Notes under the pieces: generated by a model | The model's database searches: none | Told to the model about the DNA's origin: nothing | Seen by the model: only the letters and a program-made list of their open reading frames with translations | Program-made: the position numbers and the translations under genes | In this document: piece by piece, positions 44,172-59,147 of the stretch | How the letters are laid out: every line of letters begins with the position of its first letter | Position numbering within the stretch: the first letter of the stretch is position 1 | Origin: Saccostrea cucullata | Lineage: Eukaryota | Assembly (NCBI RefSeq): GCF_032062105.1 | Contig: NW_026921444.1 | Span: forward strand, 62,001-126,000 | Length of the DNA stretch: 64,000 nt | Direction: 5' to 3'

Positions 44172-45671
44172 TTATGTAAAAGGAAATTCTTCTTCTTCCT
44201 CAGACGAATCTCTAAATCTCCGAGAAAAGCTAAGGAATGGGTCAATCCTACGTCTAGAGCCGAATAGAGAGGGTTTTCGATGCAAGTAAAGTGGTCTCCG
44301 ATATCCATTATCTTCCTTATTTCGTATCAATCTCTCTATATTATTTTCTGGACCAGGAAATACATTCCAATATGTATCCACGGCAAAGGCTTTTATGGTA
44401 CCATCATTACTGTCCCCTATCCAAATCTTACTGGTATTGTCTGTATAAATACTGCATGGACTTTCACAGTCTTCACAAATGACGAGTCCCATGAAGACAC
44501 CTGTTGGTGAAATAATGTGTAAAGTTTTAGTTGTCCCGTTCAACACAAGAAAACTGTCATCTGCGAATGATGTGACTGAAAGTGGCTTGAATTCTTCTTC
44601 GATTTGCTCTAAAGTGCATCCGGAGTATCTTTTGATTAAATGTCCATCCATGCCCCTGATATCTACAAAATTTATTTCTGCATACAGTATACACATAACA
44701 GAACAACTATCATTAACAGCAAGAGAATGAGGGTAGGATTCCACTTTTAAATCAAATTTGTCAAGTTCCTTGCCGGCATTGTCTAAAACCTGTCCAATAA
44801 GAGTTGACCGGTTTCCCATCCCCAAAACAAGAATTCGATCCTGCTGAATGGAGCATATTTTCAGAGGGTCGCAATCCTTAATAGAAATCACGGACACATC
44901 GGTGCTATTAAACGTCGTTTTCATAACTAAAGAACAATTCCGTATTAAGGAAAATATTGTTCCATCCCCTGAACCACAAAGATCTGTAGCGCCATCAACA
45001 ATCGGATTTTCACTCAAGACCAAACCATTCCGCGTGTCAAAAACGCGACAGATAGAGCCACCAAATGTTAGAAATGCAGATACGTCCTCTGATACTTGAA
45101 ATATAGACGATATACACTCCTCTTCTGCTACCTGGACACCAATTCTCATGGAAACAGTCTTCACGATAGTTGTTGGTCCATGTTTACGCAATTCAACGGG
45201 AACTGGCTCGTCTTCACTATCACTAGATACAGAGTTCGTCTCAGAAACACTGGAAGAGTCCCAGTCCGTGTCCGAATCCAGAAAAGAAGAAAATGATGGA
45301 CGCCTTTGTCTCTTTATTTCTTTGCTAGGTCTTTTGCATATATGTACAGGTGCACAGAAGGAGCACAGATACTTGTCACAATAATCGCAATCATCTACGT
45401 CATCTTCCTCTGCATTGCAGACGTCACAGACGCGTTCAGGGAAAATGTCCCGGATGAAATAATTATCCCAGAATCCCGCAACACCGTTTTCCGGTAACAC
45501 CATCACGGTTCTGCAAAGTGGGCACCGAAATTCGTCATCTGACTTGTACTTTCTTTGGTAACCTGAGATGCACCGCTTACAAAAAGTGTGTTTACAAGGC
45601 AACATCTTTGGACATTTAAAACTGTCCAGACAAATAGAACATTTTTGAGCATCGTCTATCGATATCTCCAT
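44172..45671 (-). CDS. RING (C3HC4) + B-box-like + acidic linker + NHL-like beta-propeller E3 ligase, paralog A (499 aa)
   Basis: CSIC...LPCKHTFCKRC...CPLC; CDVC-x9-CDYC-x4-CSFC-x3-H; Ser/Asp-rich linker; NHL-like repeats such as PCSIYTDNTSKIWIGD; uninterrupted ORF. Confidence 0.88.
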   Translation of the reverse strand: MEISIDDAQKCSICLDSFKCPKMLPCKHTFCKRCISGYQRKYKSDDEFRCPLCRTVMVLPENGVAGFWDNYFIRDIFPERVCDVCNAEEDDVDDCDYCDKYLCSFCAPVHICKRPSKEIKRQRRPSFSSFLDSDTDWDSSSVSETNSVSSDSEDEPVPVELRKHGPTTIVKTVSMRIGVQVAEEECISSIFQVSEDVSAFLTFGGSICRVFDTRNGLVLSENPIVDGATDLCGSGDGTIFSLIRNCSLVMKTTFNSTDVSVISIKDCDPLKICSIQQDRILVLGMGNRSTLIGQVLDNAGKELDKFDLKVESYPHSLAVNDSCSVMCILYAEINFVDIRGMDGHLIKRYSGCTLEQIEEEFKPLSVTSFADDSFLVLNGTTKTLHIISPTGVFMGLVICEDCESPCSIYTDNTSKIWIGDSNDGTIKAFAVDTYWNVFPGPENNIERLIRNKEDNGYRRPLYLHRKPSLFGSRRRIDPFLSFSRRFRDSSEEEEEFPFT

Positions 45672-45675
45672 TGTC

Positions 45676-45854
45676 CTATATTAACGAAATAAACGAACAT
45701 TAAGATTTTGGCAAGTAAATATATATTAAAATTTAAGAATACCCGGTATCACTAGAACAAAACTACTGACTTTCGGTTTGACATTGGGGATTTCCTTCTA
45801 ATTGATAAAGGTGTATCGTGAATGGGGATCAATGAGTTTAAATAGCTTACTTAC
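45676..45854 (-). other. Predicted 5'UTR intron of paralog A
   Basis: Donor AG|gtaagt at 45854 and acceptor tatag|GACA-ATG at 45676; an alternative donor TG|gtaagc lies at 45915. Confidence 0.55.
45769..45795. promoter_or_regulatory. Composite IRF-type element plus NF-kB site in the A/B divergent intergenic region
   Basis: ACTTTCGGTTTG at 45769-45780 (reverse CAAACCGAAAGT, one mismatch to the IRF consensus GAAASYGAAASY) lies 5 bp from GGGGATTTCC at 45786-45795, an exact match to GGGRNYYYCC. Confidence 0.6.
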
Positions 45855-45948
45855 CTATTTATATTATGAAAATCCCTGACTACTCAAAAGAACATTTCAG
45901 AAGCCACCGGCTTACCAGAAGCTGGAAGTTGTTGATTTCTAGATCAAG

Positions 45949-46318
45949 GTAAATTAATGCACTTGTTTTTTTACTTTTTATTTTTGAACGGAAGAGAGAA
46001 GACAACATTAACCCGTCAACTTGTGTTTTTCTACTTTCGTTTAGTAGGCGGATGGAATTGATAGCTTCGAATCACTTTCCTTTGTTTTTGTACATACATT
46101 AATAATAAATATATTTATTTATAAATGAAAATGTATTCATCATTTAATTTTAGGATTTCAACAAGAGTAATGTTAAACTTGATTTCAAATAGAAGGAAAT
46201 AAATACATGTATTCGATTGATATCGGCAAAATGGCAAACATGTTTTTTATATTTTTAAAACTCTTTGATATTAAAATAAAATAACTTTTAAAGAGTAAAA
46301 CATACTTAATTTCTACAG
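45949..46318 (+). other. Predicted 5'UTR intron of paralog B
   Basis: Donor AAG|gtaaat at 45949; branch-like cttaat followed by ttctacag| ending at 46318, 19 nt before the ATG. Confidence 0.55.
46028..46085. promoter_or_regulatory. Additional IRF/ISRE-like GAAA elements
   Basis: TTTCTACTTTCGTTT (reverse AAACGAAAGTAGAAA) at 46028 and CACTTTCCTTT (reverse AAAGGAAAGTG) at 46073. Confidence 0.4.
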
Positions 46319-56924: not shown

Positions 56925-57706
56925 AATGTATCCTACTTGAAAAAAAAAATAGACACCTCCAAGAGCATAAGAATTCTACAAGACAGCTCTGCTGTTAAAG
57001 TAAAAAAAAAAAACCCAGGAAGTTAGCAAGCCAACCAATATCTTTGTTGAAATAATGGGAAAATCAATTCTCTTTTTAATTTCTGTGAAAACTTATAAGT
57101 TTAGTGAAAAAGTCTGAAAGAAATGGTATGCTGTTCTGAACAGAATAGGATAATCTTAAGAAACTGCTCTTAAAGTAAATACATGTACGGTTAAAAAAAA
57201 TTATAGTGTGTTTAATTCAAATTATGCTTATTACATTAAGACTTTTAAAATGAAAATGTTCTGTACACGTTAAAATGTAATTCCTGAAAATAAAATTTAC
57301 TTCACTACATTTAATAAATGCATGTTTAAGTGGAAGCAAATTGCTTTAAATTAATATCTGCAGTGCACTTCAAAATAAAATTCTAAAAGTTTTGACTTAT
57401 ACGACCACTTACTTTTAGTAAAAACTTAAGCGGAGATAATGCACCCTGCATAAAACTAAAAGCAGTATTAAATATCTCTTATAATATAAAATACTAGTAT
57501 ATTAATCCTGTAGAAATATGATTCAGCTATTCAAAACTTCTACATTTTCACTGATCATGCAAATAATTTTTATGATAAAATTTTAATGTGATTTCCTCCC
57601 TAATTGAAATTGTTTTTTTTTTGTTTTTTTACTAAAATCAAATGAAAAAATTTTAACTATGCATGTATTTTGGTTCTGAAAACATACTTCCCGTATCTTC
57701 CTTCCT

Positions 57707-57714
57707 TATAAATA
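57707..57714 (+). promoter_or_regulatory. TATA box upstream of paralog D
   Basis: TATAAATA about 55 bp before the ATG, preceded by CTTCC (ETS-like) repeats. Confidence 0.45.
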
Positions 57715-57764
57715 GGAAATATAAAACAAATTTCGGCATCTAGTCACAGCCAGATGACGATAGG

Positions 57765-59147
57765 ATGGATACAGGAGAGGAGTCAAGCACATGCGCCATT
57801 TGTTTTGATTCTTTTCTATGTCCTAAAATTCTCTCCTGCCGTCACACCTTCTGCAAGCCGTGTCTCGAGGATTATACAAAGAAAGTGGAGGTGGACGAAA
57901 TAGTCTGTCCGTTATGTCGACAAAAGCAGATATTGGACTGCCGGGGTTTGGATGGATTGATGGACAACTATTTTGTACCTTTGAGGGCACCGGAACTTCC
58001 GGTTATTCTTTGTTGTGATATTTGTTACGAGGAGGCAGAGGTCAACCAATGCTCACATTGTATTCTTAAGCTGTGCTATTCCTGCAAATCATCCCACAAC
58101 CTTGCACTGAAAATGTCGGGTGAAAAAGCTGGATCGGATTTAGATTCCGAGGCGTCCGAGGGGAGTGATTTATCAGAAGATGGCGGAATGATCTCGATAC
58201 GCTCTTTAGTGCAATCAGATCATTCATCAAGAACAAAATTAATTGCAGACTTTGTTTCTGCTTTTAAAGTACCATGTAATACTCTAAATGATCAGCCATC
58301 GATTTCATGCATTTTTCCTAAATCGGAAGAAACTTGCTTGGTTATTGTGGACCTCGGTCCGGAAATCATTGAATGCACGCTAAACGGAAGGCCGTTCACA
58401 AGTAAGTGTTTCAGTGAAGGGATTCGTGGAATAACTAAGTCCTTAGACAATAAAATTTTGTTTTCAAACGTGCATGAAGCAGCCATTTTTCAAATGGTTG
58501 ACGAAACTCGCATAAAAATCTTTGCAAAATGTTATGAATTTAGGCCTTCGTCCTTATCTGCATTCAAGGACGGAAGAATCGTTTCCGTTGGGTCTGAGAA
58601 TAACTTTCATCATATTGCTAAACGTTCGGAACACCACGGAGCATTGCAAATATATGACACTGATGGGAAATTGTTGAGAGAAATAGTGAAAGATGGGAGA
58701 GAACTTTTATTCAAACATCCTGTGAGCGTTTCAGTAAATCCTAAAAACGATACAATATGTACAGCAGATGCAAAACTGAACCAAGTACTTGTTATGACAG
58801 AAGAAGGATATGTAATTAGAAAGTACAAAGGGACAAATACCGGTAGTGATGATGGACATTTTGGAATACGACTAAGTATCGGCATCTTTATTCCTACGGC
58901 CCTGTGTCATGACGAGGAAGGAAATCTCGTGATAGCCAACGTTATTGACGGATCTCTGCATATTCTTCTTCCCAACGGAGATTTCTGTGGTTTTATAGCC
59001 ACAAGGAATAATAGAAATTTCGGGAATCCTAATAGTCTTTGTTTTGATAGCAAGAATAGGCTCTGGGTTGGTGACCATCGAAACGGAAAAGTAAAAATAT
59101 TTGAAATTCTGTCTTTTAGAAATAATTTAATCGGTTGTGAACACTAA
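57765..59147 (+). CDS. RING + B-box-like + acidic linker + NHL E3 ligase, paralog D (460 aa; closest to C)
   Basis: CAIC...CRHTFCKPC...CPLC; CDIC-x8-CSHC-x4-CYSC-x3-H; shares CPLCRQKQxLDCRGL and SSRTKLIADFV with paralog C; NHL repeats. Confidence 0.9.
   Translation: MDTGEESSTCAICFDSFLCPKILSCRHTFCKPCLEDYTKKVEVDEIVCPLCRQKQILDCRGLDGLMDNYFVPLRAPELPVILCCDICYEEAEVNQCSHCILKLCYSCKSSHNLALKMSGEKAGSDLDSEASEGSDLSEDGGMISIRSLVQSDHSSRTKLIADFVSAFKVPCNTLNDQPSISCIFPKSEETCLVIVDLGPEIIECTLNGRPFTSKCFSEGIRGITKSLDNKILFSNVHEAAIFQMVDETRIKIFAKCYEFRPSSLSAFKDGRIVSVGSENNFHHIAKRSEHHGALQIYDTDGKLLREIVKDGRELLFKHPVSVSVNPKNDTICTADAKLNQVLVMTEEGYVIRKYKGTNTGSDDGHFGIRLSIGIFIPTALCHDEEGNLVIANVIDGSLHILLPNGDFCGFIATRNNRNFGNPNSLCFDSKNRLWVGDHRNGKVKIFEILSFRNNLIGCEH

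Follow-up and report, generated by a model that had tools for sequence, protein, structure and literature searches.

The window analysed here, a 64-kb stretch (64,000 nucleotides) of the Saccostrea cucullata genome that has no N, carries four paralogous genes encoding proteins with a RING finger, a B-box, a short linker and a propeller (Table 1). Genes 1-4 account for four of the five open reading frames of at least 150 aa in the whole 64 kb, and the coding sequence of each lies in a single exon. Pairwise identity among the array paralogs is 24-55%, genes 3 and 4 being 55% identical. The initial annotation had described a cluster of four genes; the four frames are indeed present, but the array has five genes, since a fifth paralog begins 314 bp beyond the window end (G000:C3581:126314). 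In total, six coil-less loci are found in the S. cucullata genome, compared with dozens of coiled-coil relatives.

Table 1. Genes and promoter features of the array (positions in the window; protein features in residues).
Feature	Position	Strand	Description
Gene 1 CDS	44172..45671	-	499 aa: RING 11-54, B-box 82-112 (His-x-Cys type, eight ligands), disordered linker 116-153, propeller about 167-437
Gene 1 5' UTR intron	45676..45854	-	GT-AG; RNA joint in two raw-read runs and one contig run
IRF-type site (AANNGAAA core)	45769..45779	-	Upstream of gene 2, within gene 1 intron; four-species alignment
KappaB consensus site	45786..45795	+	6 bp from the IRF-type site (composite element)
94-bp core	45855..45948		Non-coding first exons of genes 1 and 2, head-to-head, bounded by two splice donors
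Second kappaB-like site	45867..45876	-	8-bp core common to all four species
Gene 2 5' UTR intron	45949..46318	+	GT-AG; RNA joint in 4/4 runs
Second IRF-type site	46033..46042	-	Upstream of gene 1, within gene 2 intron
Gene 2 CDS	46338..47789	+	483 aa: RING 11-54, B-box 86-113 (C-x-H-C type), linker 114-163, propeller 164-465
Gene 3 CDS	49263..50642	+	459 aa; arose by duplication in the gene 4 lineage
Gene 4 CDS	57765..59147	+	460 aa

Domain architecture and predicted structure

The C3HC4 RING scores above the Pfam cut-offs in all four window genes, and its ligands are invariant in the family alignment. The B-box falls under the Pfam thresholds in these genes, yet seven Cys/His ligands align; it is a single B-box1-type finger with the distal His replaced, and no B-box2 follows. 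All window genes and 48 of the 55 family members have it with seven ligands, while the other 7 lack an intact B-box. Pfam NHL exceeds its cut-off only in genes 3 and 4. In two AlphaFold models the propeller consists of six four-stranded blades, whose best structural matches are the NHL domains of TRIM2, Thin, TRIM3 and Brat (Foldseek, VIA-align; Z up to 25.7), at an identity to known NHL domains of just 12-17%. The architecture of four uninterrupted frames with RING, B-box, short linker and NHL-type propeller, as initially annotated, is borne out by Pfam, the ligand alignment and AlphaFold. In genes 1-4, respectively, 62, 51, 43 and 46 residues separate the B-box His from the first propeller strand. 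The linker is rich in Ser, Asp and Glu as had been noted, but it is not mostly acidic (14-24% D+E, 12-24% Ser). A cluster of CK2 sites in it was rejected as a family feature, the median being one site. Family-specific conserved elements comprise helix 107-119 after the B-box, a short helix 153-156 and the long strand pair 164-175/454-465; the first is lacking in the gene 1 model and in many family members.

Missing coiled coil and RING-flanking helices

The absence of a coiled coil, which the initial annotation had deduced from the linker length, is supported by the AlphaFold models, a simple heptad score and RNA joints. Neither of the two models contains a coiled coil, the longest helix between RING and propeller having at most 13 residues, and the pLDDT of the linker is below 50. 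The distance from the RING to the first blade is 123-131 aa, versus about 230-440 aa in coiled-coil controls, and the linker measures 25-66 aa across the coil-less family set A2. The median of our home-made heptad score is 0.11 for the family and 0.31 for the controls. RNA joints occur in 5' UTRs only and none lies within coding sequence, at the low depth of four runs of sister-taxon reads (mostly 90-99% alike; gene 4 uncovered, gene 3 barely covered). Extra exons supplying a coil were thus rejected, and alternative O. edulis isoforms vary at the C-terminus only. The linker is equally short in the RefSeq models for C. virginica, C. gigas and O. edulis, and an assembly artefact is ruled out by the same architecture in many independent genomes.

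The helices flanking the RING, which dimerise TRIM RINGs, are also missing, a feature newly described here. Only about 10 residues precede the RING. At the equivalents of TRIM2 F20, I16 and L86 (dimer-helix positions from PMC9732051), hydrophobic residues are found in 5, 9 and 9 of 53 members, respectively, and the alpha3 region contains Pro in 28/53 members versus 1/13 controls. The family therefore does not present the alpha1/alpha3 four-helix bundle of active dimeric TRIM RINGs.

The catalytic residues are retained. The linchpin Arg is kept in 53/55 members, the Ile, Pro and Leu of the E2-binding face are conserved, and the RING is better conserved than the propeller in most orthologue pairs. 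An acidic residue occupies the TRIM21 D21 position in 49/55 members. The complete tri-ionic motif of Ube2N-recruiting TRIMs (TRIM21 E12, E13, D21; PMC6776665) is found in 10/55 members and 0/27 controls; genes 2 and 5 have all three anchor residues, and genes 1, 3 and 4 have two of the three. Judged from these residues, the family members are likely to have ubiquitin ligase activity. They are slightly more likely than not to be monomers, although strictly monomeric TRIM RINGs can be inactive, for example those of TRIM3 and TRIM28 (PMC9732051).

Shared promoter of genes 1 and 2

Four oyster species share conserved IRF-type and kappaB-type motifs at the promoter between genes 1 and 2. Ostrea, one of the four, served as a held-out test: both of its matches in 26 kb fall within the 760-bp interval. 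The window has two strict kappaB matches; one of them is the first kappaB site, which keeps its GGG-x-x-TTT core in the four species. The second IRF-type site is part of an 11-bp word, the longest common to the four species' intergenic regions, where shuffles give 0.02 shared 10-mers. Oyster IRFs are known to drive ISRE reporters (PMC5557890). Infection-inducible expression of genes 1 and 2 is therefore suggested as probable on motif conservation, and the immune role proposed earlier gains independent support from the conserved promoter of these two genes. Under the patterns used, genes 3, 4, 5 and 0 have no IRF/kappaB match within 3 kb upstream. A family-wide immune promoter was rejected, for although nominally 7 of 9 non-oyster IRF matches lie in upstream 3-kb windows (p=2e-4), they are tandem or clustered and involve only 4/10 genes. 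The gene ids do not occur in the searched parts of two C. gigas challenge-study supplements.

Ancestry and selection

The genes have orthologues in the same array in Ostrea and Crassostrea (58-68% identity): 58-68% for gene 1 and 62-68% for gene 2, with 63-64% for gene 4 in Crassostrea. The family occurs in four pteriomorph orders, those of the oysters, scallops, mussels and ark clams. Within it, gene 1 falls in a different deep lineage from genes 2-5. The family is under purifying selection, dN/dS being 0.07-0.21 for pairs with finite dS; dS is often saturated between genera, so that individual sites may still be under positive selection. Overall positive selection (dN/dS about 0.1-0.2) is not seen. 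Database alleles are 97-98% identical in three clusters, the polymorphism cluster g5 having been set aside as a mixture of two paralogs. Some gene birth and death has occurred: gene 0 is missing from the S. cucullata assembly, and genes 3/4 duplicated independently of C. virginica 4a/4b. A strongly diverged, recent tandem expansion, as first supposed, does not agree with paralogs older than the Ostrea/Crassostrea split, a conserved array, purifying selection and the separate lineage of gene 1.

The propeller tree places the family within the mollusc RING-B1-B2-CC-propeller proteins (support 100/99), which indicates that it arose by deletion; the N-terminal tree is unresolved. Spliced models were not joined in the sequence sets. 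The outgroup consisted of canonical NHLs including a Thin orthologue, and human TRIM32 and malin are not in the trees. Orthology to Thin/NHL-1 was rejected, since the Thin orthologue groups with the canonical NHLs and the RING spacing differs. The position between TRIM-NHL proteins and malin that had been proposed reduces to a likeness of architecture, being unsupported by the propeller tree. Conserved orthologues, named earlier as a potential objection if already characterised, do exist, but database members are uncharacterised, and our search, which excluded subscription journals, found no published description of the coil-less architecture or the gene ids.

Proposed mode of action and alternatives

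We consider that these proteins are probably monomeric E3 ligases with stable, paralog-specific targets. The ancestor would have been a mollusc RING-B1-B2-CC-propeller gene that lost B-box2 and the coiled coil. The top face of the NHL propeller would bind a target that is most likely a protein and that differs between paralogs, and the flexible acidic linker would let the RING/B-box head reach it. The RING may hold E2~ubiquitin closed via the linchpin Arg, with acidic anchor residues standing in for a partner RING, so that a single chain could act; local clustering on oligomeric targets would be a likely booster. Upon infection, one bidirectional IRF/NF-kappaB promoter may co-induce genes 1 and 2. 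That an old pteriomorph-bivalve family of TRIM-derived RING E3 ligases works in this way, with genes 1 and 2 co-induced, has in our judgement an even chance. A bolder version, in which IRF/NF-kappaB-induced ligases that shed both dimer devices and rewired the B-box zinc site are fully active as monomers against conserved antiviral-signalling targets, is tentative and rather doubtful.

The paralog specificity suggested initially finds support in the top-face loops, which are 50% identical within orthologue groups and 15% between them (bottom loops, 56% and 29%). One may ask whether the array is instead a fast-diversifying set of pathogen sensors with hypervariable loops shaped by an arms race. 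Loop 3b-3c, just 35% identical among orthologues, and the birth and death described above would fit, but loop 4d-5a is almost invariant among gene 1 orthologues, and the conserved array across three genera, the low dN/dS, the nearly identical alleles and the mere six loci make such sensors improbable. RNA-binding proteins like Brat/LIN-41, coupling RNA recognition to ubiquitination, share the fold, with Brat and Mei-P26 ranking highest in structural comparisons of gene 1 (Z about 25), and the gene 3 propeller is basic (pI 8.6). However, identity to Brat/LIN-41-type domains is only 12-17% and most propellers are acidic (median pI 5.3; gene 1, 4.4), which leaves this reading very remote; a protein is the likely ligand.

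As for the missing dimer devices, the proteins might be active ligases dimerising through a new surface, or co-expressed paralogs, genes 1 and 2 for instance, might form heterodimers. Candidate surfaces are the family-specific helix after the B-box, the short pre-propeller helix and the long closing strands that pair with each other. The head-to-head genes 1 and 2 would be regulated together, and both heterodimers of TRIM2 with TRIM3 and oligomers driven by the B-box have been described (PMC9732051, PMC13591260). The members without the post-B-box helix, gene 1 included, and the seven without an intact B-box speak against such dimers, which we regard as unlikely but worth weighing. Pseudo-ligases or decoys, binding E2 or targets of full-length oyster TRIMs as induced feedback dampers of signalling, would account for the loss of both devices, as monomeric TRIM RINGs are often inactive, and feedback inhibitors also fit IRF/NF-kappaB control. 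Nevertheless, the linchpin Arg, the zinc ligands and the residues of the E2 face hardly vary among the four orders, and the RING is conserved above the propeller in most orthologue pairs, so that decoys, too, seem improbable.

TRIM ligase activity is thought to need dimerisation of coiled coil and RING alike, and according to PMC9732051 no accessory mechanism by which a TRIM ligase could act as a monomer had been described. Having lost both devices yet kept the catalytic residues across four bivalve orders, these small single-exon genes offer natural test cases for the dimer dependence of TRIMs and, if the proposed monomeric activity is true, a natural set of minimal single-chain TRIM ligases. 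Little is known of the effectors that act against OsHV-1 downstream of IRF/NF-kappaB signalling in oysters, and genes 1 and 2, with their compact promoter, provide named candidates.

Comparison with known systems

The class VII TRIM-NHL proteins (TRIM2, TRIM3, TRIM32, TRIM71 and Brat) share the six-bladed NHL propeller, and the family RING, with its linchpin Arg, is nearest to those of TRIM2, TRIM3 and TRIM56; however, the family has no B-box2, coiled coil, filamin domain or RING-flanking dimer helices. The best scores on the family RING+B-box profile come from mollusc RING-B1-B2-CC-propeller and B-box-CC-propeller proteins (for example P0131, P0189, and L012/L014 of S. cucullata). Many of these mollusc-expanded proteins are long single open frames like the family, but they retain the B-box2 and coil that it lacks. 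The Thin orthologues P0166/P0196 have the same B-box variant (C-x-H-C, no distal His), and one C. gigas model is automatically named 'nhl-1' in UniProt, whereas the Thin orthologues have a coil, a C-x3-C RING spacing (C-x2-C in the family) and a canonical NHL propeller distant in the tree. TRIM52 is a TRIM with RING and one B-box only that is reported to be antiviral (PMC5035999); it is mammalian, with an expanded RING and no C-terminal propeller. Malin (NHLRC1), with a RING and six NHL repeats but no coil, was derived from a TRIM by deletion (PMC3503706, PMC3160408), and 7 family members likewise have no B-box. However, reports of malin are confined to vertebrates and amphioxus, and it depends on laforin, while most family members keep the B-box and the acidic linker, and the two coil-less forms probably had separate origins.

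Architecture of the proteins

An ORF scan of the window confirmed the four ORFs reported in the initial annotation (genes 1-4, see the table), and one GPCR gene is the only other long ORF. The C3HC4 RING scores above the Pfam cut-off in all four genes, while Pfam NHL repeats score in genes 3 and 4 only and the B-box stays sub-threshold. The AlphaFold models of genes 1 and 2 (input of 53-54 family sequences; mean pLDDT 78.1 and 86.8, respectively) display a RING and a zinc finger, then a linker of low confidence and a propeller of six blades with four strands each; no helix between RING and propeller exceeds 13 residues. 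The top structure-search matches are the NHL domains of TRIM2, Thin, TRIM3, Brat and Mei-P26 (12-17% identity). B-box and propeller are 43-62 aa apart in genes 1-4 and 25-66 aa (median 46) family-wide, and the heptad score, a custom measure made for the present analysis, has a median of 0.11 in family linkers versus 0.31 in coiled-coil controls, with slight overlap. The models, the short linker and the heptad score thus agree with the claimed absence of a coiled coil from the linker.

Features identified in the window and in related loci
Feature	Location	Strand	Evidence or remark
Gene 1	44172-45671	-	ORF scan
Gene 2	46338-47789	+	ORF scan
Gene 3	49263-50642	+	ORF scan
Gene 4	57765-59147	+	ORF scan
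5' UTR intron	45676-45854	-	RNA joint, GT-AG
5' UTR intron	45949-46318	+	RNA joint, GT-AG
Intronless rhodopsin-family GPCR	23183-24127	-	ORF and domain scan
Fifth paralog (gene 5)	G000:C3581:126314-127750 (L016:1314-2750)		starts 314 bp beyond window
Gene 5, second haplotype contig	C21763:8112-9551		reading frame intact
Distant sixth family gene	G000:C22873:877434-879002 and C7152		523 aa, two alleles
Decayed or missing B-box (RING-linker-propeller)	proteins P0093, P0107, P0124, P0097, P0101, P0103, P0086		

Extra exons could have supplied a coil. RNA reads of a sister taxon, mapped to 44050-50000, give low depth on genes 1 and 2, barely reach gene 3 and leave gene 4 uncovered; at this depth the only joints in genes 1 and 2 are the two 5' UTR introns, none lies in coding sequence, and such exons were not seen. 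The short linker is likewise present in the RefSeq proteins of C. virginica, C. gigas and O. edulis. Basal expression looks low, with 186 of 12.8 million sister-taxon reads over 6 kb. At 48430-48760 RNA reads pile up with loose ends on either side, and this stretch looks like a dispersed repeat rather than an exon of genes 1-4.

The RING zinc ligands and E2-facing residues are conserved in the family, and the linchpin Arg is kept in 53 of 55 members. TRIM2 requires a four-helix bundle with helices from both RING flanks, and is crippled by L86R (PMC9732051); in the alignment, genes 2-4 have Arg at this position. Only about 10 residues, mostly acidic, precede the family RING, the hydrophobic positions equivalent to the TRIM2 bundle are mostly lost and the C-terminal helix is often broken by Pro, so that, as judged from models and alignments, both usual dimerisation devices (coiled coil and RING-flanking helices) are missing. 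With Ube2N, acidic anchors enable the TRIM21 RING to work in monomeric form (PMC6776665); acidic residues occupy these positions in 49, 30 and 18 of the 55 members, and all three in 10. Canonical B-box1 has a distal His that is lost from the family B-box, which follows two nearly mutually exclusive patterns: 21 members, gene 1 among them, have a Cys/His soon after ligand seven, and 22 of 28 others, genes 2-5 among them, have a His in C-x-H-C. From these patterns we infer a zinc-ligand swap, the counted members not being phylogenetically independent. Seven members have no intact finger.

Evolution of the array and the family

The genome contains six coil-less loci, namely genes 1-4, gene 5 and one distant gene, whose alleles show a dN/dS of 0.16 and whose propeller is followed by an 80-aa tail. 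Gene 5 on C3581 has a one-base slip within a G run, probably an assembly error, because the second haplotype contig carries an intact copy. On that contig gene 5 is intact but the gene 4 copy is broken into pieces.

Among named proteins, the nearest relatives belong to Ostrea (68% identity) and Crassostrea (58-66%), which points to a host oyster of a different genus, probably Saccostrea. Both C. virginica and O. edulis retain the array and its upstream acyltransferase, with Peptidase_S28 also present in C. virginica; on a contig taken as C. gigas, genes 0, 1 and 2 keep their order. Gene 0 is an extra paralog of C. virginica, O. edulis and presumed C. gigas; no orthologue was found in this assembly, including window 43060-44170, its place in Ostrea and Crassostrea. 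Each of genes 1-4 clusters with its own orthologues (support 99-100), gene 3 being a duplicate inside the gene 4 lineage and gene 1 a separate deep lineage. Given the conserved array, these orthologue groups and whole-gene dN/dS of 0.07-0.21 (pairs with finite dS only), the proposed fast-diversifying sensor array was abandoned; by sequence comparison, the pattern is one of slow birth and death with a stable scaffold. The C. virginica gene 1 orthologue (locus L026:7111-8485), for which NCBI makes no call, has a frame change in the linker and is a pseudogene or an assembly error. The 891-aa C. gigas 'RING finger protein nhl-1' (P0064, UniProt K1PUR5) appears to be two genes, the gene 4 and gene 5 orthologues, fused by annotation.

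With blade positions taken from the structure model, top-face loop identity is 50% within orthologue groups versus 15% between them (bottom loops, 56% versus 29%). Both long propeller insertions are on the modelled top face. Loop 4d-5a has a sequence characteristic of each paralog and preserved across genera, while loop 3b-3c varies even between orthologues. The paralogs differ widely in propeller pI (4.4 to 8.6), and the median for the family is 5.3. Stable paralog-specific protein ligands would fit these data better than an arms race or binding to RNA.

A profile search recovered about 40 further full-length coil-less proteins with mutual identity below 50%. Named members come from Pinctada, Pecten, Ylistrum, Argopecten, Mytilus and Tegillarca, in the orders Ostreida, Pectinida, Mytilida and Arcida; none of those named lies outside Pteriomorphia, many members having no species name. 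The family forms a single group in the propeller tree (95/69, in 96% of bootstrap trees, not starred), nested within a coiled-coil TRIM-like clade (100/99), which includes expanded B-box-coil-propeller genes of the same genome and named gastropod proteins and excludes the TRIM2-like and Thin-like rows. This nesting is at odds with the suggested intermediate towards malin, and the simplest origin would be loss of B-box2 and coil from a coiled-coil TRIM-like gene. A chimeric origin is possible, as the short N-terminal tree, which lacks resolution, places Thin orthologues among the family rows, unstarred; however, neither RING spacing nor profile scores favour it.

Promoter of genes 1 and 2

A 94-bp stretch contains the head-to-head starts of genes 1 and 2, and the intergenic interval around it contains two IRF-type sites (core AANNGAAA; PMC7819612) and two kappaB-type sites. 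Within 43-64 kb it holds all IRF-core matches and two of the three kappaB-like sites. Because the IRF-core pattern was chosen after the sequence had been inspected, two unbiased promoter checks were run. No word that the window shares with the intergenic regions of both Crassostrea species is longer than an 11-bp IRF-type word, the shuffled control giving a mean of 0.02 shared 10-mers. In Ostrea, obtained afterwards, both matches in 26 kb fall within the corresponding interval, with the IRF-kappaB spacing preserved. No IRF- or kappaB-type sites occur within 3 kb of genes 3-5. Paired IRF sites upstream of one scallop and one pearl-oyster member lend weak backing to the IRF link. ISRE reporters are switched on by oyster IRFs, which both poly(I:C) and OsHV-1 induce (PMC5557890).

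At the locus of P0088, a RING gene and a further opposite-strand ORF are arranged head to head with a gene 1-lineage member; the divergent layout may predate oysters. A family member of Pecten maximus is followed 3 kb downstream by a ubiquitin-like gene (L028:15204 onward), and a full IRF consensus (L028:14974) lies 230 bp before that gene, which may encode an inducible modifier beside a ligase.

Comparison with known systems

Database entries for family members are 'uncharacterized' or auto-named, and we found no description of the RING-B1-NHL combination, the lost RING dimer helices or the family age in the literature searched. The family opens both catalysis by monomeric TRIMs and the targets of oyster IRFs to direct tests. 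The proteins of genes 1-4 are predicted to work like TRIM-NHL ligases. The family does not have the full RBCC architecture, and its proteins are therefore TRIM-like rather than TRIM, as are malin and TRIM52 (PMC3503706, PMC5035999). Coil loss has precedent, and the seven B-box-less members represent a malin-like end state attained separately.
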